From contig LSRY02000050.1 of the NCBI GenBank assembly GCA_001643675.2, forward strand, positions 248,001-312,000: DNA of 64,000 bases, in the 5' to 3' direction. The position numbers were made by a program, and so were the translations under genes. The notes under the pieces were generated by a model that saw only the letters and a program-made list of their open reading frames with translations, was not told the DNA's origin and ran no database searches. Source of the stretch: Monocercomonoides exilis PA203. Taxonomy: Eukaryota > Protista > Preaxostyla. Below, in pieces: positions 11,703-54,590 of the stretch (position 1 is its first letter; the number at the start of each line of letters is the position of its first letter).

Positions 11703-13155
11703 TTAAACGTGAACAAAATAATCAGAAATATTCAACAACAAAAAGTCACAAAATGTTTCGTTGAGAAAATCCAACATCCCATGAAAGCTTGTGATGACAT
11801 CTTCGTATCCTTCTTCTTCCAGCTTTTCGAATATCTCCATTTTTGTTGATTTTCTTTCCTCTTCTTCCTTTTCATCTTTATTCTTTTGTTTGAATTTCCT
11901 TGAAACATTCACAAGGAATTTCAAGCAATCATTTACAATTAAGTCATTCAATGTTCGTTGCTGTATCTCCTCCAAAACAGCATCAATTGCACCACTTTTC
12001 AACAAATCTTCAACTCTCACATCTCTCCTTTCTGCTGCAATTTTCAAGGGATAAATGCATTGATTGCTAATTACTCCACTATTCCCTTTTGCTGCTCGAT
12101 ATACCTGGACAATGCTATTGATTAGCCCAACATATTCTTCATTCCACAATGAGCATTAGAAGAAAAAATTATTCAATGTTTCGAGCCATCTCACCAATGT
12201 AAGCTCTTCTTTCGCTTCTTCTTTGTTCATTTCCTCTCCTTCTTTCTTCTTCCAATCCATATTTCTTGTTAGCTCTTCCAATTCTCTTGCTGCCTCTCTT
12301 CCGAAATGCAGCTCATTCACAATAACATCTTCTAAGCTTCTGTCATATCTCAATCTGAACATCAAAAAATTTCAAACAGATTGATAAGCAAACCGTGTCA
12401 GATTGCGATGTTCCTTTTGATATTCACTGATCTCCTTTATCTCCTTCAAATAAAGTTCTTGCCTCAAATCCTGGTAATAGATAATAAAAATAATAACAAT
12501 ATCAAAAAGGAAATAACATCGTTCATACATAAAATTGGTCAACACAACTCAAAGCCAATAAAGCCATTTCCACTTCTTTCTGAGTCTCCTCGCTTTCCTC
12601 TTTCTTCAATGCAGATTTCAGAAGGCAAGGCACACATATCAAAATCAACTCCGAAGAAGCCCACCTGCTCAACAAAAGATAGCATTCACAAGCATCAACA
12701 AAAAGCTTAGCTTTCTTTTCATCTTTTTTCCTCTCTTCATTGATAATCATATTCGCCAATCTTTTCTTCAATGAAGATTTTTCAAATCCATCAATATACA
12801 TATTTTTTAACACTCCCCAATATCCTATGTTTTTCAATAGAATAACTGCATTTTCCATCGATATTTTCCTTTCTTCAATCATTTTGTGAATTTTGTTGAA
12901 CATTTCCAAGTCGACGATATCATAAAATTCTTCTTTGTTCATATTGCCAATAAGTTCATTTTGTTTTTCGGTTTTGACTTTCTGTCCATCCTCATTGCAA
13001 TTTTCCAGTTCAGTAAACAATTCTAAAAAAAAATAATAATGAAAGAAATCAGCAAACGCAAATTCATTAATAACACAAGTGCACACCAATGAATTTCTCG
13101 ATGACTTTCTTCATCCTCTTTTTTGAAAATTCATTTCATCAGAAAACAATGACAT
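11703..13155 (-). pseudogene. Family A copy A1 (3-exon helical/ARM-like protein), disrupted
   Basis: Family motifs ENAVILLK.IGY, NELHFGREAARELEEL, VEDLL.SGA and FEKLEEEGYED, with frameshifts/stops near 12700, 12370-12420 and 12155. Confidence 0.85.
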
Positions 13156-14726
13156 TTTTTATCATTCATATCGAATGAGATTACGTTTGTAAATTTGCAA
13201 TTGATGGAGAACAATAACGAGCATAAAAAAATTTATTTTAGAGTGTTCACACAGTGTTTCTTGAAGCTTGTATTTTTTGCATCCAATTTAAAGGATAAAC
13301 AATTATTTCTCTTTCAAATTTTTTTGTAATGGAGATTGTGATCGAAATGCATTCAAAAAATTTAAAGCACAAATTTCTGGATTTTCACATTTTTTATTGT
13401 TCTATTTTGTTATCAATGTTTTCTGTCTGTCTCCCTTCCAAGTCCAAAAAAAAAAAGAAAAAAGAAAAAAAGAAAAGAGAAAGAGAAAAAAATTGCTAGG
13501 ATTGGAAATCATTTTCTTTTTAATACCGAATCCTGAAAAAGGGACTGATAAAAATATTTGCATAAGTAAATTAAAGATTGTGAGCGTGAAACAAATGAAT
13601 GAAGGGGGAAATGTGTATTCAACTGATTCTTAATTGAATGATTTGCAAAAGAACGGAATTTGAAAATAACATTTGAAAAAAGTTCATTGGCAAATGGGTA
13701 TGATACGACCAGTGAAAAATTCATATCATAACGATTTCTTTTTCATATTCCTACTAGATGAATCATAGTTCAATGAAGGTATAGTCTATTTTCATCATCA
13801 ATTTTCACAAAGAAAGAAACTATAATTTTTTCTATTTTTGAAATTATGACAAAAAAATTATTTTCGTATTGAAGCCCCAATATCTTCATAAATGATGTTA
13901 AAATGAAATTACTTTTAGGATAAACCCTAATTCATAGAGTTCTGTTGTTAAAATTAGTTAATAGGGTAAAAAAACCTTAAAGAAAACGTGATTAAATTAA
14001 ATGATGGGGTTGATCAAAGATTTTTATCTCTTAAAGATTTATTATGTTGGTCGATAATTTAATTTTTGAATAGAATTTTATAACTGATCTTAATTGATGA
14101 GTTCGTAAAGCTCAGTTTCGATACAGTTTTAGGTGTTTTCAAGAAAAAAATCATTACTGGCCGTATAATACCCTTTTGCCAGTTCATTGTCAAATCAAAC
14201 CACCATTTGAGAAAATGTCAATGAAACAGAGAATACCTGCTTCAAAACTGATCATTGCTTGATTGTGGCGGAATGGAAATGTCAAACATGTTGATGAGAT
14301 CTTGATTCACTTTTGTTTTGACGTTTAACCACTCTTTTAGAAACGTTCATTCTCTTATCACTCAACCCCTTTTTCTTTTGTTTTGAAATAGTTTCAAAAC
14401 TCAACTTCAAAGATTCAGTTTTGCTCTCCTCCTCTTTTTAATTTCACAGAAACATACTTCTTCCCCTCTTCAATACTTTTACGAATATCTCATCTGCTTT
14501 CTCTTTGAAATCTCGGATTATTTGAATGTTTCAATTTTTTGATCCAAGAAAAAAATGCTTATATAAGAATAGAACGATTTCAAGCACAAGATAGATAATA
14601 ATGAAATTGAAATAAATACTTGGAACAACAAAAATATCTTATTTGATCTCTCTAATAATAGAATTAATGTTTGAAATAATATTGGTTTGGATCAAATAAA
14701 TAATTTGTTTATGAGAATACTCTGAA

Positions 14727-18519: not shown

Positions 18520-18525
18520 ATTCAT

Positions 18526-20177: not shown

Positions 20178-20809
20178 ATATTCATATATATTAATACAAA
20201 TAATTTTTTAAAATGAATCCGTTATTTGTAGCAAAATTCTTCCATTTATGAAAAATACAACATTTTGTTTCATTCTTTTTCCACAACCTTTTCATGAGAA
20301 ATCTTTCATTCTCGTGTTAAAAAAACAGAGGAAAAATTTCAAAATTTCAAAATTTATTAAATGTGCAGAATGTTACAAAATGAAAAAGCGAAAAATAATA
20401 TCACATATGTAATATTTTCTTCACAGCAATTCAATTATCCTGCTTTCCTGTTTCTCGTCCACCAAACCTCATTTTCAAAACGCAACAAACATTCACACAC
20501 ATATATAAAAGATAAAACTTGAATCACAATTGTGGAGAATTCGAAGAATTTTCAAATATTTTCCATTTCGAATCGACTGTGGGTTTGATCGTCACAAACA
20601 AAAGATTTGTGCTTCTGGTGTTGCACAGCGGGACTTCTTGGCTTTGTTGCACTTCGCTTTTTGCGCCAGCTTGTATACAGCGGAACCTTTAAAACTGCTT
20701 GTGAAACCTTTTGTTTTGCGAAATCATCAACAATGTTTGATATTTTTTGTGTTTTTTTCGTTGAATATGAAGTTTTGCGTCAAATAAACATTTGCATACA
20801 ACGAGCAGA

Positions 20810-22255
20810 ATGGATGTGTGTAATGCATGCAAATCGAATGATGATGCTGAAGAGCCGTCCCTTGCAGAGAAATTTATGAGTTTGCATAAATTGTGTATTT
20901 TCAAAGATCTCGTGTTTTATGATTTTTGATGCTCGGGGAAGAATTGCTTGATCAGTTAGAGCATTGCAATGAAGAAGAACAGAAACAGAAAATCCTTGAG
21001 CTGAAAGGGATATTGGAGGAAATGAACAAAAAAGAACTTCAGTCTATTTCATCGATTAAAATATTCAACAAGATGAACAAGATGATTGAAGAAAAGAAGA
21101 TGCAATCGGAAAATGCAATTTTGCTGCTGAAACATGTTGGATATTGCAATATGCTGAAAAATGTTTGGAATCCATGCTTTGATTCGTCTTCGCTAGGCGA
21201 TAGATTTAAGAAGACGATAATTGAAGAAGAAAAGAAAAAAGAAAGAAAGAACGAAAAGCTTTTTGTTGATCTTTGCGAATGTTTTGTTTTTCTGAATGGT
21301 TGCATAAATTCGAAAATGCTTTGCGTATGCGTGCCTTGCCTCCTGAAAGTTGCATCTGTCAAAGAGGAAAGCGAGGAGACTCAGAAAGAAGTGGAAATGG
21401 CTTTGCTGACTTTGAGCAGAATGGGATATTGTGTATGAGCACTTCTTTTTCATTTTTATTATGTTTGCTTTTTTCCCCCTCATTTCTTATTAGTTGATCG
21501 AACGAGAACTGTATTTGAAGAAAATTACAGAAATCATCAAACATCAGCAGAAACAAAGAAATCTCACAAAACTTGCCTATCAGTCTGCATGGGACTTTTT
21601 GATTTACCGATTTTGGGTTGATAATAGCTTGGAAGAAGTTATTGTGAATGAGCTGCATTTTTCGAGAGAGGCAGCAAGAGAACTGGAAGAGCTGACAAAG
21701 TGCGTGAATTGGAAGAAGAAAGAAGAGGAAATGAACAAAGAAGAAGCAAAAGAAGAATTTGCATTAGTGAGATGGCTGCAAACATCGAACATTTATTTTC
21801 TCAGTTGTCGATTGCAGAATGAAGAATATGTTGAACTGATAGGAAGCATTGTTCAGGTATATCGAGCAGCAAAAGGGAATTATGGAGTAATTAGCAATCA
21901 ATGCATTTATCCCTTGAAAATTGCAGCAGAAAGGAGAGATGTGAGAGTTGAAGACTTGTTGAATGGAGGAGCTGTTGATACTGTTTTGGAGGGGATGCAG
22001 CAACCAACGTTGGATGACAATGTGATGAGAAATTGCTTGTATTTCTTTTTGAATGTTTCAAAAAGATTGAAAAGGAAGACAGATGATGAATTGGAAGTAA
22101 AAGGAAAAGAGTTGAACAGGAAGGTTTTTGAAAAGCTGGAGGAAGAAGGATACGAAGATGTTATAACCAGCTTTCATAAAATATTTGATTATCTCAATAA
22201 AAAATATTATGATGATTTATCTTTGAGTATTTCAGATTATCTTGTGAATGTTTGA
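20810..22255 (+). CDS. Family A copy A2, intact (~440 aa). Exons 20810-20879, 20942-21432, 21494-22255
   Basis: Phase-consistent GT-AG introns, no internal stops, family motifs throughout, no signal peptide. Confidence 0.85.
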
Positions 22256-22772: not shown

Positions 22773-24220
22773 TCAAATATTCACAAGATAATCAGAAATT
22801 TTCAACGATAGTTCATAATAATATCGTCTGTTTAAAATCTTTAAAGTTTCATGAAAGGTTATGATGGTATCTTCGTATCCTTCTTCTTCCATCTTATCAA
22901 AAATCTTCCTTTTCGTTGTCTTTCTTTCCTCTTCTTCCATTTTATTATCCTCCTTTTCTTTCAATTTTATTGAAACATTCTTAAAGAATTCAAAGCAGTC
23001 AGACGTCATTTCTTCTTCTATAATTGGCCGCTGCATCTCCTCCAAAACAGCTTCCACAGCTCCTCCTTTCAATAAATCTTCAACTTTCACATCTTTATTT
23101 TTTGCTGCGTTTCTCAAGGAGGAAATGCACCGATAGCTAATAATGCTGTAATCATCCTTCGCTGCTAGATATACATAAGAAATGCTGCTGAAAAGGACAA
23201 CATATTCTTCATTCTGCAATGAACAATAGCGTAAACAAATCGAGAATGTTTCAATCCATCTTTTGATTATCAGCACTTCATTCGCTTCTTCTTTGCTCAT
23301 TTCCTCTTCTTTCTTCTTCCAATTCACGCACTTTGTCAGCTCTTCTAGTTCTCCTGTCGCTTCTCTTCCAAAATGCAGCTCATTTGAAACTGTATCTTCC
23401 AAATTTCTGTCTTTGATAAATCTGTATATTAAAAACCTCCAAGCGCATTGATAGGCAAATCTTGTTAGATTATGACGGGACTGATGATATTGGATGATTT
23501 CAGTTATTTCCTTCAAATATAGTTCTTGTTTCAGATTCTATCAAAAATAAAGTGAAAAAAGCAAACATAATAAAAATGAAAAAGAAGTGCTCATACACAA
23601 TATCCTATTTCGCTCAAAGCCAGCAAAACCATTTCCTTTTCTTTTCGAGTCTCCTCGCTTTCCTCTTTCTTTAAGGCAAATTTCAACAGGCAGGACAAAC
23701 AAATCGAAAGCAATTCGTGTGTGAAGCTGCAGCTTAGAAAAATATAGCATTCGCAAAGATCAATCAAAAGCCCTTTGTTCTTTTCTTCTTTTTTCTTTTC
23801 TTCTTCAATTACCATCTTCTTAAATTTTTCGCCCAGAGAAGAAAAGTCAAAGCATGGATTCCACACGTTTTTCAGCACCTTGCAATATCCAACATGTTTC
23901 AGCAGCAAAATTGCATTTTCCATTGTCATTTTCTTTTCTTCAATCATTTTGAATATTTTATCATACAATTCTGTGTTGAAAACTGATTTGAATTCTTCTT
24001 TATTCACTCCATCAACTATTTTATTCATTTCTTCTTTTTTCTTTCTCTGCACATCTTCATTGCAATGCTCCAGTTCACAAAACAATTCTTCAATAAATTT
24101 ATTTATGATGGAAAGCGCTGAACACTCAAAAAATAGTAAAATGAACAAACTTGAAAACTTATCTTCAAGAGACGGCTCCTGGATATCATCATTGGATTTG
24201 TCTTCATCACATATTTCCAT
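22773..24220 (-). CDS. Family A copy A3, intact. Exons 24220-24151, 24087-23597, 23537-22773
   Basis: Same exon sizes (70 and 491 nt) as A2; convergent with A2. Confidence 0.85.
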
Positions 24221-26799
24221 TCTGCTTATTGTATTCAAAGATCAATGTTCAACAAAGCATCACATTCAATGAAAATATTACAAAAACAACAAATGTTGTT
24301 GATAATTGACAAAATAAAAATATAATTGTCGAACTCAATTCCTTTGCTCAGTAAAAATCTGCGTCAAAAAAGAAATCACAAAGAAGCTGCAATATTGTTC
24401 GTATTTAGCCAAATACGAAAGAGTTTATTTTCTGTCTGATCGAACCAACAATAATTCATTTCATTAAAATGGATTGAATTTCGATGAAATATTGAACATA
24501 TTGGGATATGTACCACATATAGTCGATATTAAATATCAAATTTTTTCTATTTTAACATTCTGAGCAATATGAAGAAGAAGAGAAAAGACTTTGAAAAGAT
24601 CTTTTCGAAGAGGAGACTAAAAAGCAACAATTTGTTCATTAATGTGTGCATTTGAACATTGTTGCAAATTAAAATTCAAACATAAATATTGCACTTATTT
24701 CCCTCACATTAAGAGTTATCTGGAAGCTTTCCTTGTCAGAAATGATTTTTTCTGTTATTTCAGAGTGTTTGCTTGTTTCCGTGAATGTTTCAAATTTGAA
24801 GTGTTGAGAAACGTTTTGAGATATCGGGATGATTTTGTTATTTGTTCGTGACTTGAGTGGGCCATCCAGGCTGAAGGAAGATTGATGGAGGGAATCAAGC
24901 TTTCAACAATTCGCAGTTTTTTTGATGATTGGGCGAATGATAATTGAACGCATGAGAGAATTTATCAAGGCAACAATGGACAGAATTGTTAATTGAGCAT
25001 TGAAAGAGATTCTATTCCAAAAGATTTTGAGGCTGAGAGAAGATGAACAAAGTCGAGATGGCGAAGAAAGATTAATGCAATATGCGGAACCAAACACATG
25101 CAGAATTTTGAATTCATTTCAACACATTTATCGTTTGATGGTGATTTCCTTTAAACGTGTATTTTTCCTTCAAGCTGCTTGTTGCATTTTGTTGAAAGTC
25201 ATCATTTTGGATTGTTTTGATGGCCATTGTTGATTCACCGATTTCAGTGTGGATTTCGAGGCAAACCTTGAAGCCACATTGAAGAAGAAGAAACGAATCA
25301 AAAAGACAGAACAGATAGCGATAGAAATGTTTGATTTAATTAAGGTGTGTTATCCAATTTATTGTTGCATTTGCAATGTTTTTTTTTTTGAAAAATCAAC
25401 AAAAGAAAAAGAAAGAAAGAAAGAGATCATCAAAAATAAAAATAAGTGAAACATTTTTTGCAATGATAATTTCTAATTTTTTCCTTTCTATTCTATCTCT
25501 TTTTTTCTTTCACTTTTAGTGTTTCACAGAAGTTCTTTTGACTTTTGCTAATAAAAAATAAATGGTTGGGAAGAAATGATTAAAGGCAGACTGCTTCAAT
25601 CAGAGAGGCGAGAAGACGAGCATTTTTTTGAAAAATGGTATTGCCTCATTTGGAACTTCATATTCTTCTTTTTCTTTGTGTTCTTTTCTTTGATAATTAA
25701 TTGGTTAATTTTGCGAATTTTTAAAATATATTTCACTCAAAAACGGATTGGTCTTGCAGATCCTTATCAATTCAATGTCAGCAACTTGCAATAACTTGTG
25801 AAAGCACTCACCATCGTCGTATTTGTTGGCCTGTGCTTTTTTTGACAGCATCTGCTATTGAATGTGTCTTTCTTGTTTCTTTCCATCAAAATCGTAGCAT
25901 CGCTCAGAACAATGCTGAACAGCAGCTGGATGGAGAGAAGACGCATTAGCAGAATGGAAATGCTGCTGCATTCAGCTGAGTCTGCTTGCAGATGCGAAGG
26001 GGAAGAAGAAGAAGAAGGGGAAGAAGAGGTCAGAGTTATCAGTCCGTTTGAAGAGGAAGTGAAGGAAGTGAAGGAAAGAGATGAAAAGAAATGAAGAGGA
26101 AATGTTGAAAAAGAAAGAGAAGACGAAAAAGATGAGAAAGAAAGAATGAATGAAAGTGAGAAAGAAAGATGAGGAATGTTTGAATGAATATGAAAAAAAC
26201 ACGATGGAAGAAACAATTAATAATACTTTTCAATAGAAGAGCAGAAATGCCATCTGGATGGGGAAAACAATAGATTTCATTCAAAAGGGGAAGGAAAGGC
26301 TTGTCAAAAAGAGTGAAAGAAATGAAAGGAAGAATCTGGAAATGATTCGTTTTTATGGAGAATTAGGTGAAAAGAGGAATATTACTTGCTAATTTCAAAT
26401 TATTTTAAGACAAAAATCCTGCTTTTCATTTGAAAAAGAAAAATCTTCTCTTTTTGTTTCATTTCTGTTCTTTTTTTCTCCAGTTAACAGCAATTAAATA
26501 AAAATTTATTCTTTCACTGATTTTTTTCAAAAAGTCTTTCATAGAACTTCTTTAAAAAAACTCCAAAACGAAGGAATGACTATTAAATGCTGGCTCACAG
26601 CATTAACATTGAACTACAACAACAAAAAAACAAAAACAAAGATAATTATCTCAATTTTTCAATTTTCTCAATTCAAACTGCTTAAAAACTCATTCAAAAA
26701 AAAGGAAGAAAAGAAAGGAAAGGAAAGATAATTTTTCTTTCATTGCATAAATGAAAATACAATGCTCTTATTCATTTTTTTGGATTTAATACAAAATTG

Positions 26800-26813
26800 A
26801 AAAAAAATAAAAA
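26800..26813 (-). terminator. Pol III oligo(T) terminator of the 5S gene
   Basis: T5-A-T8 run beginning at the 5S 3' end. Confidence 0.75.
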
Positions 26814-26929
26814 GCTATAGCACTGGGTTTTTCCAGGCGGTAACCCATCCAAGTACTAACCCAGCGTTGGCCGCTTTACTTCGGAGGTCTGAAGGGATCC
26901 GGTGCGTATGACCAACTATGGCCGTAGCT
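26812..26929 (-). rRNA. 5S rRNA (single dispersed copy)
   Basis: Reverse complement reads AGCTACGGCCATAG...GCACCGGATCCCTTCAGACCTCCGAAGTAAAGC...GTTAGTACTTGGATGGGTTACCGCCTGGAAAAACCCAGTGCTATAGCT, followed by a T-run. Confidence 0.95.
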
Positions 26930-26960: not shown

Positions 26961-27559
26961 ATGTTCACACAATCATTCTTTTCCTCTTTTTCAATCTATT
27001 CTCATCATCAAAATAGCTTTCCCAATTATCTTCTTTCTTTTATTTTCTTTCTCTTCAATTTCAACTTTTCCTTTCTTCCCCTCTCTTTCACCTTTTCTCT
27101 TTCAAACTCTTTTTTAATCACTTTTTCGCTCTTTCATCTTTCTATTCATCATTCACTCACTAACACACACTCTCTCTTTCTCTTTCTTTTCTTCTTTTCT
27201 TCTTTTCTTTCGTTTTATTCATTTGAGTTTTTTATCCCTTCTTCATTTTTCGTATTCTTTTCACAAAGCAGTGCGGAAGATGACGCAAAAGAAGAAGAAA
27301 CTTGGATTGTTGGTGAATTAGACAGACAAAATTAATTCTTTCTGTATGTGATAAGGGAGCCTCTAGAACAGGAGCGATTGGATGAATAAAATGAAAAAGA
27401 AAGAGAAGAAGATGATGAAGAATCGAGATAATGAGGATGAAATAGTAGAAGGAGGAGGAAGAGGAGGAGAAAGTTCAGATTGAGATTTTGAGCCAAAAGC
27501 TGCAGGACGAAGAGAAAATGGAGACTTTTTGAGAGTAGAAGAAGAAAGAGGAGAAGAAA

Positions 27560-27850
27560 GAGGAGGAGGAGGAGGAGGAAGAAGAAGAAGAAGAAGATGA
27601 TGATGATGATGATGATGAAGAAGAAGAAGAAGAAGAAGAAGAAGAAGAAGAAGAAGAAGAAGAAGAAGAAGAAGAAGAAGAAGAAGAAGAAGAAGAAGAA
27701 GAAGAAGAAGAAGAAGAAGAAGAAGAAGAAGAAGAAGAAGAAGAAGAAGAAGAAGAAGAAGAAGAAGAAGAAGAAGAAGAAGAAGAAGAAGAAGAAGAAG
27801 AATAAGAAGAAGAAGAAGAAGAAGGAGGAGGAGGAGGAGGAGGAGGAGTT
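27560..27850 (+). repeat. Compound (GGA)(GAA)(GAT)(GAA)n microsatellite
   Basis: Directly visible; ~60 near-pure GAA units. Confidence 0.95.
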
Positions 27851-28199
27851 GGAAGAAGAAGTGAGAAAGAAAAAGAAGAAGAAGCTTTGTGATATGATGA
27901 CACGTGAATTGAATAAGTTGATTGAAGATCGAGAATTGTGAAGATAAATGAAAACAAACATTAACGTTGATGTTCGTAGAAATCATTTTTTCTGGCTTTT
28001 CATTTTTTTCTTCTTCCGTCTTCTGGCAAACAAAATCCTCAAACTCTTCATTCATCTCTTTCCATCCACTCAACCATCTTCAAACACACCCATAACCCCA
28101 TCGATGGTGCCATCCTCCCAAACCTCAACAGCCCATCCACATCTCTCTCTGCCTTCAATGCTTCTTTTCTCCACCGAACAATCTCTTCACCAAATGCTC

Positions 28200-29300
28200 C
28201 TATGGTTCATGTTGGATCCGAAACTCATAGAAAATATTCCTGGGAGATCGACTTCGTTTGATGTGAATAACCATCGTTTCGAGTGGTGCGAATGGAATGA
28301 TTCAAATGGTGGCAGTGATTGGAATGGTGCACTTTGCGTTTCCTGCGCAAATGCTAATCTCACAATCACTTCTTGTTCATTCAACAATTGTTCATGTAAT
28401 AGTCAGGGCGGAACGTTATATTGCAGATATTTGCGAAATGTCAACATTGCAAAATCCAATTTCACAAGTCGCTCTGCGTTTCAAGGAGGAGCGAATTGTG
28501 CAGCTTATCCACAGACATCCTCTATTTGGTCATTCTCCGAAACAGAGCGGAAAATTGAAAAATAATAAATTGGTGCAGAACCGGTTGGTATTTCTATATT
28601 GGTGATTTTTCTTCAAACGGTCAATTCCTGTTCACCAAATGCAAGTGTATCGCAAATTCTGGTGGTGATTCTGCTGGTTCTCTAACATTCAGTTGGCCTC
28701 CACAAAACAAACCATCTCAGTTTTTGGTTAATGATTGTCAGTTCATCAATAATAAATTGACAAGTTCATCGTATTATGGAGGCGCTGCCATTTTCTTCTA
28801 TTCAACTTATTCTTGGATGAATGGAGTAAAATTCATCACTTTCTGTTTCTTTGATGGTAACACTGCAACAAACGGCAGGGGGAATGATGTGTTCTTTTTC
28901 GGAAGTGATATCACACAATCACCATTTATTCAGTGTGGATCAACAACCCAAGCAAAAATATTATGGAATCAAGGAACAGCTGATAATGCTGGGTTCAATG
29001 GCTGGCGTCCAATCATCAGCCAGAACAAAACCGTTGCCAGCAGTGGAACTGATGTAGATGCCTGTGGCAAAACACAGCAAAGCTCCTGTGCTACGGTGGA
29101 GTATGTCCTCAACGGCTTCATTGCTCCCTTCAGCGATGCCTCCCTCCCTCTTTCTCTCTTTCTCTTTCTCTCTTTCTCTTTCTCTCTTTCTCTTTCTCTC
29201 TCTTCTCATCTCCTCTTTCACTCCCACTCAAACACTCTCACATTTCGTACCCCAAATACAAAAATCACTCGAAATGATGAACTATTTCTTATATCCTTTT
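28200..29300 (+). pseudogene. Beta-helix surface-protein family fragment, frameshifted
   Basis: LTITSCSFNNCSCNSQGG, NDCQFINN...GGAAIF, FCFFDGNTA..GRGNDV, GTDVDACG...CATVEY. Disrupted near 28500-28720. Confidence 0.75.
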
Positions 29301-30573
29301 GATTTCTTCAATTGTTTCTTCTTATTTTGAATAGTTTCTATTTCATTGCAAAATTCATAAGCTTTCATCTTCTTTTCAACTGAAGCATATACCATCACTT
29401 GCCTTTCATAGATCCCTAAATCAGCACAGGTTGTATTGCTTCTTCGTCATTTTCCATTTGATTTGGCTTCTTCTTCAAATGAAAATTAAGCTCATGAAAA
29501 AAGAATAGTCTATTTCTTTTCTTCAAATAGCATTTCTTCAATCATATCAGAGAGTTCTTCTAAACTTTCAATTTCTATTGCTGTTTTCACTTCACCTTTT
29601 TTGTCCGCTGCAGAAGCTCTCATTTCATAGAATTATCCTTCGCTTATTTGTTTTCTTATAAATTTCTATTCCTCTCTTCATTTCTCCTTTGATTGCTTGA
29701 TGAATGCGCATGTTGTGTTATGCAATCTCTCAAACATCATCCATATTATAATGTGTTCCAAATAACGTCTTTTGCCTTGTTCTTTCTGTTTTCTGTGAAT
29801 TCTTTCATCTTCCAAATGCAAAAAAGTCGGATTCGATCATCTTGGATTGTGCACCTGATGATGATTGGCCATCCTCCGCTAAAAGTTTCTTCCATTTCGT
29901 TGTCTCATAATTTCTGCTGATATTCAATGAAAGAACAAATATTTCTTTTGTCTTTCTGTGTAAGAATGAAAGACAAGGCCTGGAGCTGAATTTGACAGGA
30001 GCCGAATAAAACGATGTAAAAACATTTGTTGTTTCGAATCGAAGAAGGTGTTGAAGAAGAAGACGATTGTAATGAAATGAAATTAATTCGTTCAAATTGG
30101 CTTTTTTCCATCACGAGAATCGTGAATGAAAAGAAGGATAATTCTGTGCCTGATAAGCCCAGACGAAGAAAAGCGACAGAAGAAATTATTTGCTCAATTC
30201 TGCAAAGCAGCAGATTGAGATGTGTGAATGCATCAGTTCGATGATGCTTCGATCAAATGTTTAATGAAACGAATCATCAAATAAAAAAACGTTAAAGAAG
30301 TTGAAGCAAAAGAAGAAGACGATGAAGACGAGGAAGTGGTGAATAAAGAGAAAAAGAAGAAAGAGAAGAAGAAGAATACAAGGAGAAGGAGTGTTGTGTG
30401 CGGAATATGTCTGTCGGAGAAATAGAGCATTCATATTGCATTTCTCCGAATGAGAATGTTCTCATAAGCTTATTTTAGAATTCATGAGAAGATGTGATGT
30501 GTTGAAGGAGTTTTAATTGCAAGGGAAAGTGAAAAAAGAAGATGAAGAAGAGGAAGAAGAGGAAGAAGAAGAA

Positions 30574-30606: not shown

Positions 30607-31040
30607 AAAGAAGAAGAAGAAGAAGAAGAAGAAGAAGAAAGATAAGAAAGTGAAAAAAGAAGAAGAAGAGGAGGAGGAAGAAGAAGAAGAAGAAGAAGAG
30701 AAAAGGATAAAATGAAAAGACAGATTTTGTACATATGGCATTTCATTTCCAATGTTGCGAATGACAGTTGAGAAGAAGAGGAACAAATGAAATCATTTTC
30801 TTTTCAATTTGTTGTGCTGCCGATTGATAAGCATCAACACATTGGAAGGTCTGCTCTCTGATTCAATGTCAAATGAGAGGAATTATAAAAAGAGGAAGAA
30901 GAAGAAGTTGAGAAGAAGACGATGGTGAAGAAGAAGAAGAAGATGATGATGATGATGAAACTTGTGCTGAATGATTAGAATGCAACAGAATGCAACGCAA
31001 TAACAGCATTTGCACACAAAATTCATTCATCAGCAGATAT

Positions 31041-31081
<41 letters not shown>

Positions 31082-35081: not shown

Positions 35082-35288
35082 TTAAATATTCACAAAATAA
35101 TCGGATACATCGAACGGTATTCTAGGATGATACATTCTGTTAAGAAAATGAAACACTTCGAGAAAGTAAGCAATGATATCTTCGTATCCTTCTTCCTCCG
35201 TCCTTTCGAATATCTTTCTTTTCATTGATATTCTTTTTTTGTCCTTCGATTTCATTAACCATCTTCCCTTTCAATCTTTCTGAAATAT
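35082..35288 (-). pseudogene. Family A 3' remnant
   Basis: Encodes IFERTEEEGYEDIIAYF...SDYFVNI*. Homology stops abruptly at 35288. Confidence 0.75.
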
Positions 35289-41335: not shown

Positions 41336-41366
<31 letters not shown>

Positions 41367-42956: not shown

Positions 42957-44237
42957 ATGAATAAGGGAAAATCCAAAACATCATCAAGTTTTTTATTATC
43001 ATTATTTTGATTTATTTAAACTTTCCATTGAAAATCTTGCGATTTAATTATATTGATATTTGCATGGATAAATCCTAATTCATTTTTTTTAGAAAATGCA
43101 ATCGTGGAAAGGCAGAAAATTTTTAATTCAAAAACATCATACTCCTCTGACGCTTTATCATTCAATTCACAATTGCAACCTGTTAATAAACCTCAAATTT
43201 CTTCGCAATATAAAACTTCTTTTCAAAATCATAAAAAAGCAGAAAAAGGAAATAAAATTGGATCTTCTCAAAATTTGATTTCATCATATTCATCACTCAG
43301 CAGCGGAGAAATCCAAAAGAAGCCGGTTCAAAAATCTGAAAGTGCAAAGCTTCTGCAATCCATCTCATTTCCTCAGCTTCCTTCTCTGCCAACATCCGAA
43401 GCACAAAAACCTTCACCAACAACCCAGAAATTGCCTTCCGGCGCGCTTCTGCCGTCTCCCCCGGCGGATATTCCCCCCTTCGTCGTGTTCGGAGCGTCTG
43501 ATCCCATTAATTCGCCATTGCTTGAGACAGGAAATGATTCAATAATTGAACCGGCTGTGATGCTGCCTCCACCACCAGGATTGGATTGCGATGATCTTTC
43601 GTCTCTTCAGTCTTCTTCTTCTTCTTCTCTTTCTTCTTCTTCTTCTTCTTCTTCTCATTCATCATCATCATCGTCGTCTTCTTCTTCTTCGCTTTTAAAT
43701 TCACCTTCTCATTCACCATTGCTTCAATCTCCTGTTGTTAATGTTTCTTCCTCTTCCTCTTCTTCTTCCTCTCTTCTTCCTATTCCTCTTCCTATTCTTT
43801 CTACTCCTCCTCCTCCTCTTCCTCCTCCTTCTTCTATCTCTTCTTCTTCCTCTAATTCTTCTTCCTCTTCTTCTTCCTCTTCTTCTTCTTCTTTCTTATT
43901 GCCATCTCCATCATCTTCATCATCATATTCTTCTTCTTCTCTTTCTTCCAATTCAAAAATTTCTTCTTCTTCTCCTTCTCAAAATTCTTCTTCTCCTTCT
44001 CAAAATTCTTCTTCTCTTTCTTCTTCTTCCTCATCCTCTTTTTCTCCTTCTCCTTCTCCTTCTCCTTCATCTTCTTCAAAATCTAATCATAATATCAAAA
44101 ATAACACTCAAAAACAAAACATTAACACCAAAATTTCCTCAATTTCTTCTTCAAATTCGAACAAAATTTCAAAATTTGAGAAAAATTCAAGTAAAAAATC
44201 AGAAATTAATCAAAAAACGGGAAAAAATAAAGTTATT

Positions 44238-44269
<32 letters not shown>

Positions 44270-44591
44270 TCCTTCTTCTTCTTCTAATTTAACCTATTCT
44301 TCTTATTCTTCTTTATCTCCTTCCTCTTCTTCTTCTTCTTCCTCTTCTTTAATTTCTTCTTCTTCTAAAAAATCTTCAATAATTTCTTCTTCTCCTTCTC
44401 CTTCTCCTTCTTCTTCTTCCATTTCATATTCTTCTTATTCATCTTTATCATCATCATCTTCTTCCTCCTCTTCTCCTTCTTCTTCTCTATCCTCTTCTCT
44501 TTCTTCTTCTTCTTCTTCATCATCTTCTAATAATAATAATAATAATAATTCTATATCTTCTTCTTCTTCTTCTTCATTAAATTCTTCTCTT

Positions 44592-44623
<32 letters not shown>

Positions 44624-45086
44624 CTCTTCTTCCTCTTCTTCCTCTTCTTCCTCTTCTTCCTCATCTTCCTCATCTTCCTCATCTTCCTCATCTTCCTCAT
44701 CTTCCTCATCTTCCTCATCTTCCTCATCTTCCTCATCTTCCTCATCTTCCTCCTCCTCCTCGTCCTCGTCCTCTTCTTCTTCTTCTTCTTCTTCTTCTTC
44801 TTCTTCTTCTTCTTCAAATCCTTCTTCTTCTTCCTCTATTTCTTCTGTTCCTCCTCCTTATATCCCTCCTTCTTCTCCTCTTTCTTCGAATTCTTCTTCT
44901 TCTTCTCATTCATCATCATCATCGTCGTCTTCTTCTTCTTCGCTTTTAAATTCACCTTCTCATTCACCATTGCTTCAATCTCCTGTTGTTAATGTTTCTT
45001 CCTCTTCCTCTTCCTCTTCCTCTTCTTCCTCTTCCTCTTCCTCTTCCTCTTCTTCTGTTTCTTCTCTTCCTCTTCTTCCTTTGCCT

Positions 45087-45118
<32 letters not shown>

Positions 45119-45338
45119 TTGTATTTCTTCAAATAAATCATCATCTTCCTCATCCTCTTCTTCTTCCTATTCAACTTATTCTTCCCTTCCTTCTCCTTCA
45201 TCTTCTTCTCAAAATTCTTCTCTTTCTTCTTCTTCTCCCTCTCCTTCTTCCTCTTCCTCTTCATATTCTTCTCTTTCTTCCAATTCTAAAATTTCTTCTT
45301 CTTCTCTTCTTTCCTCTACCTCTTCCTCCTCCTCTTCC

Positions 45339-45370
<32 letters not shown>

Positions 45371-46462
45371 CTCCTCCTCCTCTTCTTCTTCTCTTTCATC
45401 CAATAAAAATACATTTCCAAATGATTTTTCATCTAATTTTCTGTCAATTTTGAGCAATAAAAGCAAAAAAAATGAAGAAAATGAGAAGAAAAAAGAGAAG
45501 AAAAGAGAAGAAAATGAGAAGAAAAACGAGAAAAACAAGAAAAAAGAAGAGAAAAATGAAGAAAAAGAAGAGAAAAAGAGAGAAAAAGAGAAGAAAATAA
45601 AAGAAAATGAGAAGAAAAAGATGGAAAAAATAGAAAAAAAGAAAGAAAAAATGAGGGAAAATGAAGAAAATGAAGAAAAAAGAAGGGAAAATGATGAAAA
45701 TGATGAAAAAATGAGAGAAAATAAAGAGAAAATAAAGGAAAGAGGAAGAAAAGGAGAAAGAAGAGAAAGAAGAGAAGAAAAAGAAGAAGAAATAAAAGAA
45801 AGAGAAGAAATAAAAGAAAGAGAAGAAAGAGAAATAGAAAGAGAAGAAAGAGAAAGAAGAAAAGAAGAAGAAGAAGAAGAAGAAGAAAACCAAAAATTGA
45901 ATGAAATGAAGCAAAAAGCACAAGATTTATTAGAAAAACTGAAAATTGGAGCAAAAATAAAGGAGAAAGAAGAGAAAGAAGAGAAAGAAGAGAAAGAAGA
46001 GAAAGAAGAGAAAGAGAAGGAAAAAGAGGAAGAAGAAGAAGAGAAAGAGAAAGAAGAAGAAGAAGAAGAAGGAAAAGAAGAAGAAAAACTTGAGAAAATT
46101 GAAGAAAAAACGGAAAATTTCGGAAAGAAAAAGGAGAAAGAGGAAAAATCGATAAAAGAAGAAATAAAAGAAGAAAATGATGGAAATGATGATGAAGAGA
46201 AAGAAAAGGAGAAAGAAGAAGATAAAGAAGAAAAGGAGAAAGAAAAGGAGAAAGAAGAAGAAGAAATAAAAGAAAAAGAAGAGAAAGAAGAAGAAAATGA
46301 AGAAATAAAAGAAGAAGAATTTAAAGAAGAAGAAGAAGAATACGAAATAGGAAGATGGGAACATCCAAGTGGAGACTATTTAGGAAGCGAAGAAATAGAT
46401 TTTGGATTTATTATAGAAGAAGAAGAGGAAGAAGAGGAAGAAGAAAGAGAAGAAGAAGAAAG

Positions 46463-46493
<31 letters not shown>

Positions 46494-48158
46494 GAAAAAG
46501 AGAAAAGAAGAGAAAAGAAAGGAAAAGGAGAAGAAGAAAGGGAGAAAAAAGAGGAGGAAGAAGAAGATATTGAAGAAGAAAAAATTGAAAAGAAAGAGGA
46601 AAAGGAAGAAGAAAGAGAAGATGAAGAAGGAGAAGAAGGAGAAGGAGAAGAAGAGAAGAAGAAGAAGATTACAAAGAAGAAAAAGAAAGAGAAGAGGAAG
46701 AAGAAAGAGAAGAAGAAAGAGAAGAGAAAGAAACATTCAAAAGAAATATTAAGTGAAGAAGAAGAAAAGGAAGAAGAAGAAAAGGAAGAAGAAGAGAAAG
46801 AGAAAGAGAAAGAGGAAGATGAAAAGAAAGAAGAAGAAGAGAAAGAGGAAAAAGAAAAGGAAGAAGAAGAAGAGAAAGAGGAAAAAGAAAAGGAAGAAAA
46901 GGAAGAGGAAGAAGAAGAAGATGATGAAATAGAATTTGGAGATATCAAAATATTAAGTCATCAAATAAAATCAAAAAAACATGAAAAAAAGGAGAAAAAA
47001 GAGAAAAAAGAGAAAAAAGAGAAAAAAGAAAGAAAAGAGAAAAGAGAGAAAAAAGAGAGAAAAGAGAAAAAGAAACAAAAAATGAATGAAGAAAATGAAG
47101 AAAATGAAGAGGAAGGAGAAGAAGAGAGAAAAGAAGAGAGAGAAGAAGAGAGAGAAGAAAAAGAGGACAGAGAAGAAGAAGAAGAAGAAGAAGAAGAGGA
47201 AAGAGAAGAGAGAGAAAGAGAAAGAAATTCAAAAAGTCATTTTTCTTCTTCTCTTTCTTTTTCTTCTTCTTTTCCGTCAAATTTTGTTTCTTCATATGTT
47301 CCTTCTTCTCAATCATCATCATCATCATCATCATCTTCTTCTTCTTCTTCTCTTTCTTCTCAAAATTCTTCAAATTCTTCAAATTCTTCTTCTCTTTCTC
47401 CTCCTCTTTCTCCTCCTCTTTCTCCTTCTTCTCCTTCTCCTTCTTCTTTTTCCTCTCCTTCTCTTTCGTCAAATGATGAAAGAAACAAAAGAATAGGAAG
47501 AATTGCGAAGTTGTTGAGAGAAATAAAAAGAGAGAAAGAGAAAGAGAAAGAGAAAGAGAAAGAGAAAGGAAAAATGAAAGAGGAAGAGGAAGAGGAAGAA
47601 GAAGAAGAAGAAGAGGAAGAGGAGGAAGAGGAAGAGGAGGAGGAGGAGGAAGAAGAAGAGAAAGAGAAAGAAAAAATGAAAGAAGAAGAAGAAGAAGAAG
47701 GTGAAGAAATTGAAAAGGAAGAAATAAAAGAGAAAAAGGATGGAAAAGAAGATAATAACGAAGAAAAGGAAGGAAGAAGAGAAGGAAGAAGAGAAGAAAG
47801 AGAAGAAAGAGAAGAAAGAGAAGAGGAGGAAGAGAAAGAGGAGGAGGAAGAAGAGGAAGAAAGTAAAGAAAAATATGAAGAGAAAAAAGAAAATGAGAAA
47901 GAAGAAGAAATAGAAATTGAAAAAAGAGAAGAAAAAGGAGAAGAAGAAAAAGAGAAAGAAGATGAGATAAAAATGGAAGAAGAGAAAGAAAAAGAAAAAG
48001 AAGAGGAAGAAAAGGAAAAGGAGAAGGAGAAAGAAAAGGAGAAAGAGAAAGAAGAGGAAAGAAACGAAGAAGGAAATGAGAAAGAAAAAGAAAAAGAAGA
48101 AAATGAAAATGAAAATAAAGAAGAAAATAAAGAAGAAAAAGAAGAGAGAGAAGAAAAA

Positions 48159-48205
<47 letters not shown>

Positions 48206-51200
48206 ATTGGAAAGTTCAGAAGAAAGGAAAGAGAATGAGAGAGATGCGAAGATAAGGCAATTGATAGCAGCATTGAAGAAGAGGGCAACGTTGAGGGAGA
48301 TGAAGAAGAAAGAGGAGAAGAAAGAGGAAGAGGAAGAAGAAGAGGAAGAGGAAGAAGAAGAAGAAGAAGAGGAAGAAGAGAAGGAAGAAGAGGAAGAGGA
48401 GAGGGAAAGAAAAGAGAGGGAAAAAGAGGAAGAGGAAGAGAAGGAAGAAGAGAAGGAAGAGAAACAAAAGACAGAGAAAGAAGAAAAGGAAGAAAATGAA
48501 GGAAAGAATGAGAAGAAGACAGAGAAGAGAGAGGAAGAAGAAGGAAAGAAGAGAAGAGAAGAGAAGAAGAAAGAAGAAGTAGAAGTAGAAGAGGAAGAGG
48601 AAGAAGAGAAAAATGAAGAAATTTCATTGAAAAATTCAAAAACAACGAAGAAGAAGAAGAAGAAGAAGAAGAAAATTGTGATAATAAAAAAGAAGAAGTT
48701 GAAAAAGAGAAGAGAAGAAAGAGAAGGAGAAGAAAGAGAAAAAGAAAGAAAGAGAAAAGGAAAAGGAAAAAGAGAAAGAGAAATGGAAAGAGAAGAAGGA
48801 GAAGGAGAAGGAGAAGGAGAAGAAGGAGAAGGAGGAGAAGAGAAAGAAGAAGAATTTGAATTTGGAATGAAAGAAATACAAAAGAAGAGAAAATTGAAAC
48901 GAAAAAATGGAAACGAAAGAGAAAAAGAAGAAAGAGAAGAAAAAGATGATGACGAAGAAGAAAAAGATAAAAAAGAAAGAAAGAAAAAGATAAAGAAGAA
49001 GAAGAAGAAGAAGGTGAAGAAGAAAAGAGAAGAAGAAGAAGACGATGATGATGAAGAAGATGAAGAAGAAGAAGCTAAAAATGAAGAAAAAGGAAAAGAA
49101 AAAGAAAAAGGAAAAGGAAAAAGAGAAAGAGGAAGAAGAGGAAAAGGAATCGAAAGAAAAAGACAAAGAAACAAAAAGGAAGAAGAAGAAGAAAAAGAAA
49201 AAGAAAAAGATGAGGAAAATGAAATATTTACTCAAAAAACAGAAAATATCAAAGAAAAAAAGAAGAAAAAGAAGAAAAAGAAGGGAAAGAAGAAGAAAAT
49301 TATCAATAAACAAAATTCAAAAACAAAAAATAGACATTTAAAGAGATCAAATTCTCTTTCTTCTCTTTCCTCCTCCTCCTCCTCTTCCTCTTCCTCTTCT
49401 TCATTTTCTTCTCATTCCTCCTCCTCCTCCTCATCTTCTTCTTCTTCTTCATCTTTGCCTGGTTTGCCTGCTCTTCCTCAATTAAAAGTTGAGCAATTTA
49501 ATTCATCATCATCATCATCATCATCATCATCTTCTTCTTCTTCTTCTAATTCTTCGAATTCTTCTAATTCTTCCACTTCATCATCATCTTCCTCTTCCTC
49601 TTCCTCATTCTCTTTCTCTCCCTCTCCCTCTCCTTCTCCTTCTCTCTCTTTCTCTTCTTATTCTTCTCAAAATCCTTCAAATCTTTATCCTCTTCCTCTT
49701 CCTCAAATTTCTTCTTCTTTTCCTCCTCCTCCTCCTCCTTCTCCTTCTTCTCTTCCTCCTCCTTCCTCCTCCTCTTCTTCTACATCTCCATATCCTTATC
49801 CCTATCCCTATCCCTATCCCTATCCCTATCCTCCTTCTTCTTCACTTCCTCCTTCTTCTCTTCCTTCTCCTTCTTCCTCCTTATTCCCTTATCCTCCTCT
49901 TCATCCCTCTAAACCTCCTTCTTTTCCTTATCAACCTTATCCTTCTTCTTCTCCTCCTTTTCCTCTTTCTTCCACACTGCCTTCTCCCTCTTCTTCTTCC
50001 TCTTTCTCTTCCTCTTCTTCTTTTCCTCCTTTTAGAAATCCTTCTATTCCTTCACCAAAGCCAAAAATTTTGTCTTCTTCTCTTCCTTCTTCCTCTTCTT
50101 CTCCTTCTCTTTCCTCTCCTTCACTTTCATCACCTTCTTCTTCTTCTCCTTCCCTTTCCTCTTTTTCTTCTCCTCTTCCTTCTTCCTCGAAATTAAATTC
50201 TTCTTCTTCTCTTTCTTCTTCAAATTCACCTAATTCTCTCGAAATTTCCAATCCCAAGCAGCCAAAACAGGCAAAGATCCCAAATCCGCTAAGCAGAGTT
50301 AATCCTTTCACTCCTCCTGTTCCTGTTAGTCAAATTAATATTTCTAATCAAATAAATCCAGTTAATCCAATTAATCAAGTAAATCAAGTAAATCAAGTAA
50401 ATCAAGATAATCAAGTTAACAAAGTTAATCAAGTAAATCAATTAAATTTAGTTAATCAAATAAATAAAACAAATAAAACAAATAAAACAAATAAAACCAA
50501 TCAAACAAAAAAAATTAATCAGACGAATCTTGCTAATCAAACAAACAGTTCCAATCAATTTAACCATTCAATTCGCTCTAGTCAATCAATTCATTCAAAT
50601 CAAGTTGTTCCTCTTAATCCTTCTCATTCTCTTAATTCTTTTGATGCCTCTAATCCTTCTAATCAAATTAGTCAGTTTAACCAACAAACCAATAAAATTC
50701 TTCTTTCTCCTCCTTTCTTCGAGCCTGCTCCAAAAGCAATGCTTCGTCAAAAACAGATTTTGAACTCAACTTCTTCTTCTTCTTCTTCTTCTCCTCCTCT
50801 TTCTTCTTCTTCTTCTTCTTCTTCTTCTTCTTCTTCTTCTTCATCAATTCACAACAAAAAACAGAAATTTGATAGAAATTCTTCACATTTTTCTCAACAT
50901 TCGAGTTCTCTCAGCTCTCCTCTTTCTTCTTCTTCTCCACTCTCATCGACATCTTCTTCTCTTACTCATTCTATTTCTTCTTCTTTCCCTTCTTCTTCGT
51001 CTTCTTCTTTTCCGAATGTTTCAACCAGCCTTCAATCAGATATTTCTTCGGATAAACAAAGAAGAAATAGAATCAGAGAAAGAAGAGGAAGAGGAAAAAT
51101 GAACATGAACTCTTTTGCTTCTAATTCTTCTTCTTCTTCTTCTCTCTCTTCTTCTCCTGTTTCTTCTTCTCCTCTTTTTTCTTCGATTCCTTCTTCTTCT

Positions 51201-51587
51201 TCTTCTTCTCCACCATTTCCTCCTTCAAATCGATCATTTCGTTCTCCTTTATCTTCTTCTTATCCAACAATGTCTTCTCTTTCTTCTTCTTCTCTTTCTT
51301 CTTCTTCTCTTTCTTCTTTTTCTCACTCTTCTTCTTCATCTCCTCCTCTTTCTTCTTCACAGACACTCAATCTTTCAGCAAATGCACGTCCTTTTCAGCC
51401 AAAATTCCACTTTCAAAATTCAACAAATTTGGATAGCATAGGAGTGACAAATGTAAATGTGAAGGAAAGTTATTTAACAGAAAGTTATGTGATTGAAAGA
51501 AATGAAGGGGAAAAGGGAAAATTTGAAGGAAAAGGAAAAGGAGAAGGAGAAGAGGAAGAAGAAGCAAAAGAAGAAGCAAAAGAATAA
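42957..51587 (+). CDS. ~2,850-aa intrinsically disordered Ser/Pro- and Glu/Lys-block protein with C-terminal PAM2 motif. Exons 42957-42987 (or ATG 42942) and 43093-51587
   Basis: An 8.5-kb stop-free frame with an in-phase GT-AG intron at 42988-43092. LSANARPFQP fits the PAM2 pattern LxxxAxxFxP. Confidence 0.8.
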
Positions 51588-52769: not shown

Positions 52770-54211
52770 TTAACAAAAAACCAAATAATCCTCAATATTT
52801 TTAACAAAACGATTAAAATAAACTATTCCATTTCCCAGATAGCGATAAAGAAGAATTGTGCAATCTTCGTATCCTTCTTCTTCCAGCTTTTCAAAAACTT
52901 TCTTTTTCGTTGCCTTTCTTTTCATTTCATCATTTTCATTTTTCTCCTTTCTTTTTAATCGATATGAAATATTTTTCAAAAATTTCAAGCCATCAAACAC
53001 AACGTAATCATTAAACGTTGGCTGCAGAATCTCCTCCAAAACAGCTTCCACAGCTCCTCCATTCAACAAATCTTCAACTTTCACAACTCTCTTTTCTGCT
53101 GCATTTCTCAAGGAATAAATGCAGAGATTGCAAATTACTCCATTATTCCCTTTTGCTGCTCTAAATACCTGAACAACGCTATTGATTAGCTCAACATTTT
53201 CTTCATTCTTCAATCGACAACAGTGAAAATAAATCGAGAATGTTTCGAGCCATCTCACCAATGTGAGCTCTTCTTTCGCTTCCTTTCCTCTTTCCTCTCC
53301 TTTTTTCTTCCAGTCAATGCATCTTGCTAGCTCTTCCAGTTCTCTTGCTGCTTCTCTTCCAAAATGCAACTCATTTATGATGACTTTATCCAAGCTCATG
53401 TCTTTGTGTAATCGATTAATCAAAAACTGCCAAGCACGCTGATAGGCAAGTTTTGTGAGATTTCTGTGATTCTGCTGATGTTTGATGATTTCTGTTATCT
53501 CGTTCAAATACAGTTCTTGTTTCACTTCCTAATCAGAAATTAGAAAATAGCAATAATATCAAAAAAGAAATAACAATGTTCATACGTAATACCTGTTGAT
53601 CCTGCTCAAAGCCAGCAAAGCAATTTCCACTTCCTTTTGTGCCTCCTCATTTTCCTCTTTTACCGATGCTGCTTTTAGGAGACAAGGCACGCATACGCAA
53701 AGCATTTTGGAATCTATGCAACCATTCAGAAAAACAAAACATTCGCAAAGATCAACAAAAAGTTTTTCGTTCTTTCTTTCTTTTTTCTTTTCTTCTTCAA
53801 AAATCATCTTCTCAAATCTTTCGCAAAGCGAAGATTTTTCAAAGCATGGATTCCAAACATTTTTCAGCATTTTGCAACACCCAACATAATTCAGCAGCAA
53901 AATTGCATTTTCCAATTGCATTTTCTTTTCTTCAATCATCTTGTCCATCTTGTAGAACATCATAATTGATGAAATAGACTGAAGTTCTTTTTTGTTCATT
54001 TCCTCCAATATCCCTTTCAGCTCAAGGATTTTCTGCTTCTGTTCTTCTTCATTGCAATGCTCCAACTGATCAAGCAATTCTTCCCCGATCATCAAAAATC
54101 ATAAAACACGAGATCTTTGAAAATACACAATTTAAGCAAACTCGAAAATTTCTCTGCAAGGGACGGCTCTTCAGCATCATCATTCGATTTGCATGCATTA
54201 CACACATCCAT
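52770..54211 (-). CDS. Family A copy A7, intact. Exons 54211-54142, 54079-53586, 53528-52770
   Basis: In-phase introns; 5' half nearly identical to A2. Confidence 0.85.
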
Positions 54212-54590
54212 TCTGCTCGTTGTATGCAAATATTTATTTGATGCAAAACTTCATATTCAACGAAAAAAATCACAAAAAACAGCAAACATTGTTGATGATT
54301 TCGCAAAACAAAAGGTTTCACAAGCAGTTTTAAAGGTTCCGCTGTATACAAGCTTGTGCAAAAAGCGGAGTGCAACAAAGCCAAGAAGTCTCGCTGTGCA
54401 ACACCAGAAGCACAAATCTTTTGTTTGTGACGATCAAACCCACAGTCGATTCGAAATGGAAAATATTTGAAAATTCTTCGAATTCTCCACAACTGTGATT
54501 CAAGCTTTATCTCATATATATGCGAATGTTTGTTGCGTTTTGAAAATGAGGTTTGGTGGACGAGAAACAGGAAGGAAGGAGGATTGAATT
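53600..54590 (-). repeat. ~1-kb inverted duplication of 20427-21420, including ~380 bp of upstream sequence
   Basis: Near-identical non-coding and coding sequence; both yield the MWRIRRIFKYFPFRIDCG ORF. Confidence 0.95.

Follow-up and report, generated by a model that had tools for sequence, protein, structure and literature searches.

The 64,000-nucleotide stretch of the Monocercomonoides exilis PA203 genome that we analyzed (assembly GCA_001643675.2, contig LSRY02000050.1, positions 248,001 to 312,000 of the forward strand; hereafter the window) contains five near-full copies and one fragment of a gene with three coding exons and a product of 441 amino acids. The near-full copies and the tail fragment were located by tblastn, with the exon products of copies A2 and A3 as queries. 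They lie where the original prediction, made from the sequence alone, had placed them, and all of the peptide and intron strings that it quoted are present. A1 (11706 to 13032, reverse strand; tblastn and translation) is a pseudogene made up of exons 2 and 3 only; its translation has in-frame stops at 12374 to 12372 and 12158 to 12156, both in exon 3, and no recognizable exon 1. A2 (MONOS_13824; 20813 to 22255, forward strand) was defined by tblastn and an RNA splice joint, with exon 1 starting at 20813, exon 2 ending at 21432, intron 2 at 21433 to 21493, and exon 3 at 21494 to 22255; its annotation consists only of a truncated model of 292 amino acids. A3 (MONOS_13825; 22773 to 24220, reverse strand) has a full model of 441 amino acids (P0032), which, mapped onto the DNA, gives exon 1 at 24220 to 24151, intron 1 at 24150 to 24088, exon 2 at 24087 to 23597, intron 2 at 23596 to 23538, and exon 3 at 23537 to 22773. 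Its intron 2 is of the GTATGA...TAG type. A5 (MONOS_13826; 32484 to 33752, forward strand; tblastn and translation) has a premature TGA soon after the conserved EEGYED motif, leaving its product about 25 amino acids short. Tail-to-tail with it lies the C-terminal tail remnant of a further copy (35085 to 35252, reverse strand; tblastn and translation). A7 (52770 to 54229, reverse strand) is a near-full copy with a divergent C-terminal tail, as judged from tblastn, sliding-window identity, and translation. A retrocopy origin of the family copies was rejected because introns are retained. Adjoining the A1 pseudogene is a microsatellite of about 1.6 kb (9662 to 11308) made of TAT/ATA-type trinucleotide repeats, with a GC content of about 11%.

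We then considered what kind of protein the family encodes, searching the exons of A2, A5, and A7 separately and using the annotated full-length A3 protein as input for folding. A comparison of five exon products with Pfam by hmmscan returned only sub-threshold noise, with no match to Arm (PF00514) or HEAT even at E values up to 1, and a profile search against PDB sequences came back empty. We modeled A3 with AlphaFold2, using 46 full-length paralogs; the resulting structure was all-helical, with 21 helices, a mean predicted local distance difference test (pLDDT) score of 84.9, and a predicted template modeling (pTM) score of 0.83. Foldseek searches of PDB with this model matched designed armadillo-repeat (ARM) proteins and importin-alpha (probability, 1.00; E value, 3e-4 to 7e-3; template modeling [TM] score, 0.4 to 0.5), and a search of the ESM Atlas matched ARMC8, SPAG6, importin-alpha, and similar ARM/HEAT clusters with TM scores by query of 0.53 to 0.68. 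The model thus predicts that the family protein is an armadillo-type alpha-solenoid. It has an isoelectric point of 5.2, is rich in glutamate and lysine, and has an acidic N terminus. A simple hydropathy check revealed no convincing hydrophobic leader or membrane segment (the maximum 19-residue hydropathy, 1.61, falls in a core helix), and the whole A3 chain was modeled as a soluble solenoid. The family product is cytosolic and acidic, with about 441 amino acids. The claim that it is a cytosolic helical-repeat protein without a signal peptide was borne out for the fold, and its proposed binding role follows from that fold: a binding or scaffold module is most likely, judging from the model. 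Like importin-alpha, beta-catenin, ARMC8, SPAG6, and the designed ARM proteins, the family is predicted to form a right-handed alpha-solenoid; unlike these proteins, it shows no sequence similarity to them that we could detect and carries no IBB, U-box, or other partner domain. Separately, the gene model MONOS_9651 (P0206 and P0270; 884 to 955 amino acids) combines a family-type armadillo region, in its first 310 or so residues, with the annotation 'putative Ser/Thr protein phosphatase family'; this reflects either a genuine fusion or the merging of two separate genes.

Genome searches, run on the 82.3-Mb, 101-contig assembly in which the window lies on the contig that we refer to as C48, showed that the family is very large. 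A2 exon 3 as a query gave 1,964 first-look candidates, and all 150 of those that were scored had E values below 1e-75. A back-translated EEEGYED pattern matched 718 loci genome-wide, and a second pattern, taken from the conserved E.HF..EA..EL block, matched 566; the reversed control for the first and the control for the second both matched none. Where checked, the two patterns occurred about 495 nt apart at the same loci. The family thus numbers roughly 600 to 700 or more copies. Two of these, at 640679 to 641440 (forward strand) and 649182 to 649943 (reverse strand) of contig C80, are inverted with respect to each other, lie 8.5 kb apart, and have equal scores, suggesting that an inverted duplication took place very recently. 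Beyond this genome, a profile search of 1.84 billion cluster representatives matched 333 clusters. The 10 clusters that we looked up and 120 named hits from a word search were all uncharacterized M. exilis proteins (MONOS_...) of about 441 amino acids; the weakest of the 333 matches were unlisted, so that distant relatives elsewhere are possible. Judging from these matches, the family is apparently specific to the M. exilis lineage as far as sampled, unlike armadillo proteins generally. In the 2019 genome paper, 332 tyrosine-kinase-like genes are named as the largest M. exilis family, and a keyword search there returned no mention of armadillo proteins (PMC6759080). Keywords for gene families, paralogs, and duplications turned up only kinases in the 2021 assembly paper (PMC8767320). 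The armadillo-type family therefore seems to outnumber every other gene family of M. exilis, with about twice as many members as the 332 kinases, and amounts to a few percent of all genes. The chief new fact is the presence, in this mitochondrion-less organism, of a very large, apparently species-restricted, and undescribed armadillo-type family.

The copies in the window do not keep the same closest relative along their length. Sliding-window nucleotide identity showed A2 and A7 to be 92 to 100% identical from 20400 to about 21330 (A2 coordinates) and 72 to 87% identical thereafter, with the chief breakpoint near 21330. This high-identity block takes in about 400 nt of upstream DNA, exon 1, intron 1, and most of exon 2, in agreement with the original prediction. 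Also as predicted, intron 2 types are swapped among copies in the nucleotide display, A3 and A5 resemble each other across exon 3 (84 to 90% identity), and exon 3 of A2 resembles that of A1 (97% identity at 21859 to 21959). We extended the comparison to a formal set of 50 copies by adding 45 further copies with their flanks (designated by L numbers) to the five in the window. Within this set, the nearest relative of each window copy changes every 100 to 200 nt, mostly to copies outside the window. A2, for example, is identical to L014 over 21280 to 21380, is almost identical to L020 and L019 through intron 2, and matches A7 and L006 further upstream. The five-copy comparison had therefore captured only a small part of the patchwork.

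Nearest-neighbor switching by itself is weak evidence, as frequent switching is expected in a star-like family: its rate was 0.77 in the real data versus 0.55 in single-tree simulations. For this reason, we relied on formal tests. The pairwise homoplasy index (PHI) of the 50 copies was 1.1445 compared with a permuted value of 1.2377 ± 0.0074 (z = -12.6; none of 1,000 permutations was as low), and site compatibility decayed with distance. We then compared trees for exon 2 and for the two halves of exon 3 (FastTree topologies; approximately unbiased [AU] tests in IQ-TREE). The segments rejected each other's trees by 586 to 1,237 log-likelihood (lnL) units (AU test, P value ≤ 0.006) and rejected the concatenated tree by 269 to 425 units, whereas rejection amounted to only 1 to 65 units in two data sets simulated on a single tree under the fitted model. 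Furthermore, among pairs with a global identity below 85%, we found 114 near-identical tracts in 102 of the 1,225 pairs and none in either simulation. Median tract length was 94 nt, with a 90th percentile of 152 nt and a maximum of 399 nt. A single tree for all segments, the outcome that the original prediction had named as telling against it, is thus firmly rejected by the segment-tree likelihoods, the PHI result, and the tracts. The mosaicism is real and statistically strong, and we infer that the molecular process behind it is interlocus gene conversion, as had been proposed.

We next looked into where and between which copies exchange occurs. A tract was carried by 15.1% of same-contig pairs versus 5.7% of different-contig pairs (odds ratio, 2.9; P value = 6.5e-7); such a preference for nearby copies is typical of ectopic recombination. 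As an internal control for the specificity of the mosaicism, we used the introns and upstream DNA of the family itself, and exchange was found in both: intron 2 types are swapped in the same way as exon segments, and a PHI signal is present inside the A5-type upstream non-coding DNA (z = -3.7; 0 of 2,000 permutations). The A1 pseudogene takes part as well, sharing a 201-nt tract at 99.5% identity with L006 (331 kb on C48, 70 kb away) and a 72-nt tract at 100% identity with A2. Pseudogenes may thus act as donors, as had been suggested, in that A1 shares fresh tracts with intact copies, but the notion of a pseudogene archive is not supported: stops were found in only 13 of the 150 best exon-3 matches (about 9%), and about 91% have an open exon 3.

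Upstream of the coding exons, the copies can be sorted into distinct types. Copies of one type are 91 to 95% identical over the 400 nt preceding the start codon and 80 to 96% identical over exon 1 plus intron 1, while their coding exons stand at the family average of about 76%. For pairs of the same type, the upstream distance was 0.084 versus a synonymous divergence of 0.39, the latter being 0.43 for unrelated pairs. The non-coding module of A2 (20413 to 20812, forward strand) is 93 to 95% identical to the upstream regions of A7, L006, and L035, and includes a 5' untranslated region (UTR) exon, whose last position is 20734, followed by a GT..AG intron (20735 to 20808). The module of A7 (54230 to 54605, reverse strand) is of the same type (93.6% identity to that of A2 by blastn), and its homology to L006 continues for at least 800 nt (92% identity over 834 nt). 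The A3-type non-coding module (24221 to 26017, reverse strand) is shared with at least 10 other copies by blastn; it matches L008, L010, L014, L018, L019, L020, L029, L037, and L043 at 77 to 89% over about 830 nt and, further upstream, L009 at 84% over 1,059 nt. In total it extends at least 1.8 kb. The A5-type non-coding module, of about 1.5 kb (30880 to 32400, forward strand), has at least 40 to 60 copies at 75 to 93% identity according to a DNA search of the genome, and the list of open reading frames (ORFs) and an Rfam search gave no ORF and no Rfam match for it. We rejected a transposon hypothesis, as homology boundaries vary between copy pairs and the upstream module has no ORF. Homology-limited conversion is the simplest reading of the decoupling of the 5' module from the coding body.

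Evidence for expression came from public runs available as short contigs from bulk material, with RNA from an independent 2024 study and DNA from 2016. RNA contigs supported the splice joints of intron 2 in A2 (21432 to 21494) and in A3 (23537 to 23597), and exact-match RNA contigs were found on both genes; both are therefore transcribed. RNA contigs with an A2-type 5' UTR also splice 20734 to 20809; because they carry five mismatches, we assign them to a paralog of the same type.

To assess selection, we compared nonsynonymous with synonymous differences among 48 intact copies. The ratio of nonsynonymous to synonymous differences per site (pN/pS) was 0.52 over all pairs and 0.51 for locally nearest neighbors. 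A counting test with local trees likewise gave an omega of 0.52, with 135 of 414 codons under purifying selection. Nine codons were nominally positive, which is below the chance expectation, and none survived correction (best, codon 336; P value = 5e-4). Selection is thus purifying overall. About 10% of codons have a pN above the family-wide pS, and these cluster in inter-helix loops and at helix ends (A3 residues 99 to 110, 141 to 147, 227 to 232, 285 to 295, 317 to 337, 362 to 367, and 424 to 429), taking in both of the hypervariable patches that had been noted from the sequence. The alternation of a conserved scaffold with such patches is confirmed: the patches occur in 39 to 46 distinct versions among the 50 copies, compared with 15 for the EEGYED block. 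The variable sites are therefore clustered, not scattered along the sequence, and neutrality at these sites is not rejected. No codon proved robustly positive.

Taken together, these results are probably best explained by ordinary interlocus gene conversion combined with birth-and-death evolution in a very large lineage-specific family. In such a process, the family would evolve by duplication and loss, and homologous recombination between paralogs would copy short segments from copy to copy. The tracts measure mostly 60 to 150 nt and up to about 400 nt; now and then a longer 5' block is exchanged, such as the roughly 0.9 kb common to A2 and A7. Exchange is commoner between copies on the same contig, is also seen across contigs, and acts wherever homology exists, be it in exons, introns, or upstream DNA. 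The coding body is homologous across the whole family of about 700 paralogs and the 5' modules only within a type. Because flanks would recombine only within their type, the 5' modules of recent duplicates would stay alike while the coding bodies are overwritten patchwise. As a result, almost no two genes would combine the same set of variable loops with the conserved scaffold. Programmed control of diversification would have no part in this, and the idea of a dedicated, cassette-like diversification system, with which the mosaics had been compared, was not upheld: each copy has a 5' module of its own, expression was seen for both A2 and A3, exchange reaches non-coding DNA and is biased by proximity, and omega is about 0.5.

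Several observations weigh against explaining the family by conversion with birth and death. This explanation is limited by its sample of 50 out of about 700 copies, which were picked because they matched A2 best and among which contig C48 is overrepresented. The difference of 8.4% upstream against 39% at synonymous sites would also be expected if selection favored diverse coding bodies or if the 5' modules were under constraint. The near-uniqueness of the variable patches in each copy and the open exon 3 kept by about 91% of copies leave room for a selected repertoire. In addition, codons 285 to 295 have a ratio of dN (nonsynonymous divergence) to mean dS (synonymous divergence) of 1.3 to 2.1, with the i, i+3/4 spacing of a helix. 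An alternative that would draw on these points is a selected recognition repertoire, in which the products would be intracellular binding proteins (substrate adaptors, or surveillance of microbes or viruses) whose loop diversity is selected, with conversion as its favored source, by analogy with plant and fungal intracellular immune receptors. The location of the near-unique patches in inter-helix loops and helix ends, the ratio at codons 285 to 295, the much greater divergence of the coding body than of the 5' module within the same genes, the intactness of most copies with at least two expressed, and the very large size and species restriction of the family would all suit such a repertoire. 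We nevertheless consider it unlikely: omega is 0.5 overall, the nine nominal positives fall short of the number expected by chance and none of the codons remains positive after multiple-test correction, exchange is not limited to the variable patches or to coding DNA, and no effector, NOD, F-box, or other signaling domain was found attached in the Pfam scan of exon products. The fullest form of the idea, an intracellular armadillo recognition repertoire of about 700 genes whose loops are kept diverse by selection and reassorted by conversion, with the 5' modules as independent regulatory cassettes, is more doubtful still. If true, it would represent a cytosolic system of variable receptors, serving surveillance or the targeting of substrates, for which no protist counterpart has been described.

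A programmed cassette system, in which silent copies, among them pseudogenes such as A1, would serve as an archive for rewriting a few expressed genes, in the manner of trypanosome VSG or Neisseria pilin, would account for the short-tract character of the mosaics and for the near-identical tracts of 72 to 201 nt that A1 shares with intact copies. We regard it as very improbable, given that about 91% of the sampled copies have an open exon 3, so that there is no large silent archive, that each copy has its own 5' module, that A2 and A3 both yield spliced RNA contigs, that the hydropathy check revealed neither a signal peptide nor a membrane anchor, and that the transfers involving A1 could have gone in either direction. 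The mosaics might instead be chimeras produced by long-read assembly of a repetitive family and its polishing with short reads; the assembly is indeed based on Oxford Nanopore Technologies (ONT) reads with Illumina reads mapped back on, according to the assembly paper (PMC8767320), and the public runs that we inspected are short contigs, not single DNA molecules spanning a whole gene. Yet the copies diverge by about 25%, far too much for collapse or mis-polishing, and the recombination signal is family-wide. For A2, A3, and A5, EukProt and NCBI give the same protein sequences, and we take these two proteomes to be separate annotations (an older one based on 454 data and a newer one based on ONT data) because several other MONOS genes differ between them. 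Moreover, contigs of the 2016 DNA and of the independent 2024 RNA match exactly over tract junctions: DNA contigs match exon 3 of A3 exactly, and a 278-nt RNA contig (22954 to 23231) spans, with zero mismatches, a 62-nt tract that A3 has in common with A5 and L034, along with the A3-specific sequence on either side. An artifact of this sort is therefore extremely improbable.

Gene conversion with birth and death in a large family has parallels in other protists. The var genes of Plasmodium falciparum form a large family with interlocus gene conversion and ups classes of upstream sequence. As in var, the M. exilis paralogs are mosaics of short shared tracts, their upstream types are discrete and decoupled from the coding body, and exchange is biased toward nearby copies while also taking place between chromosomes (here, between contigs). 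Unlike var products, the M. exilis proteins are armadillo-type and cytosolic, not surface antigens; there was also no demonstrated positive selection and no sign of mutually exclusive expression in the bulk contigs. In Trypanosoma brucei, VSG mosaics arise in a cassette system by conversion from silent reservoirs into expression sites (PMC7641422). The M. exilis family resembles it in that segmental conversion makes new combinations and the pseudogene A1 shares in the exchange, but it differs in having no layout of expression site and silent archive: copies are mostly intact, have their own 5' modules, and include at least two that are transcribed. The Giardia families of ankyrin-repeat 'Protein 21.1' and NEK are likewise very large families of cytosolic repeat proteins in a metamonad, with mostly unknown functions, and are described as among the most dynamic families and as linked to rearrangements (PMC7641422). 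Protein 21.1 has ankyrin repeats, in contrast to the armadillo-like repeats of the M. exilis family, and the two have no sequence relationship. The M. exilis family offers a clear and statistically strong example of how conversion among hundreds of paralogs scrambles coding bodies without eroding the identity of the 5' modules beside them. Unless recombination is considered, trees, orthology calls, read mapping, and dN/dS estimates will be misleading for the family and probably for other repeats in this genome as well.

The DNA between the copies holds further features. A full-length 5S rRNA gene (26812 to 26929, reverse strand; Rfam RF00001, 86.6 bits) is flanked by the A3 upstream module on one side and a long tract of low complexity on the other. 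A long polypurine/polypyrimidine simple repeat (27400 to 27960) has poly-F/L/S/K ORFs on either strand and is followed by beta-helix receptor-like ORFs at 27948 to 29302. Finally, an open frame of 2,844 amino acids with a strongly skewed composition, outside the armadillo family, occupies 43053 to 51587 on the forward strand.

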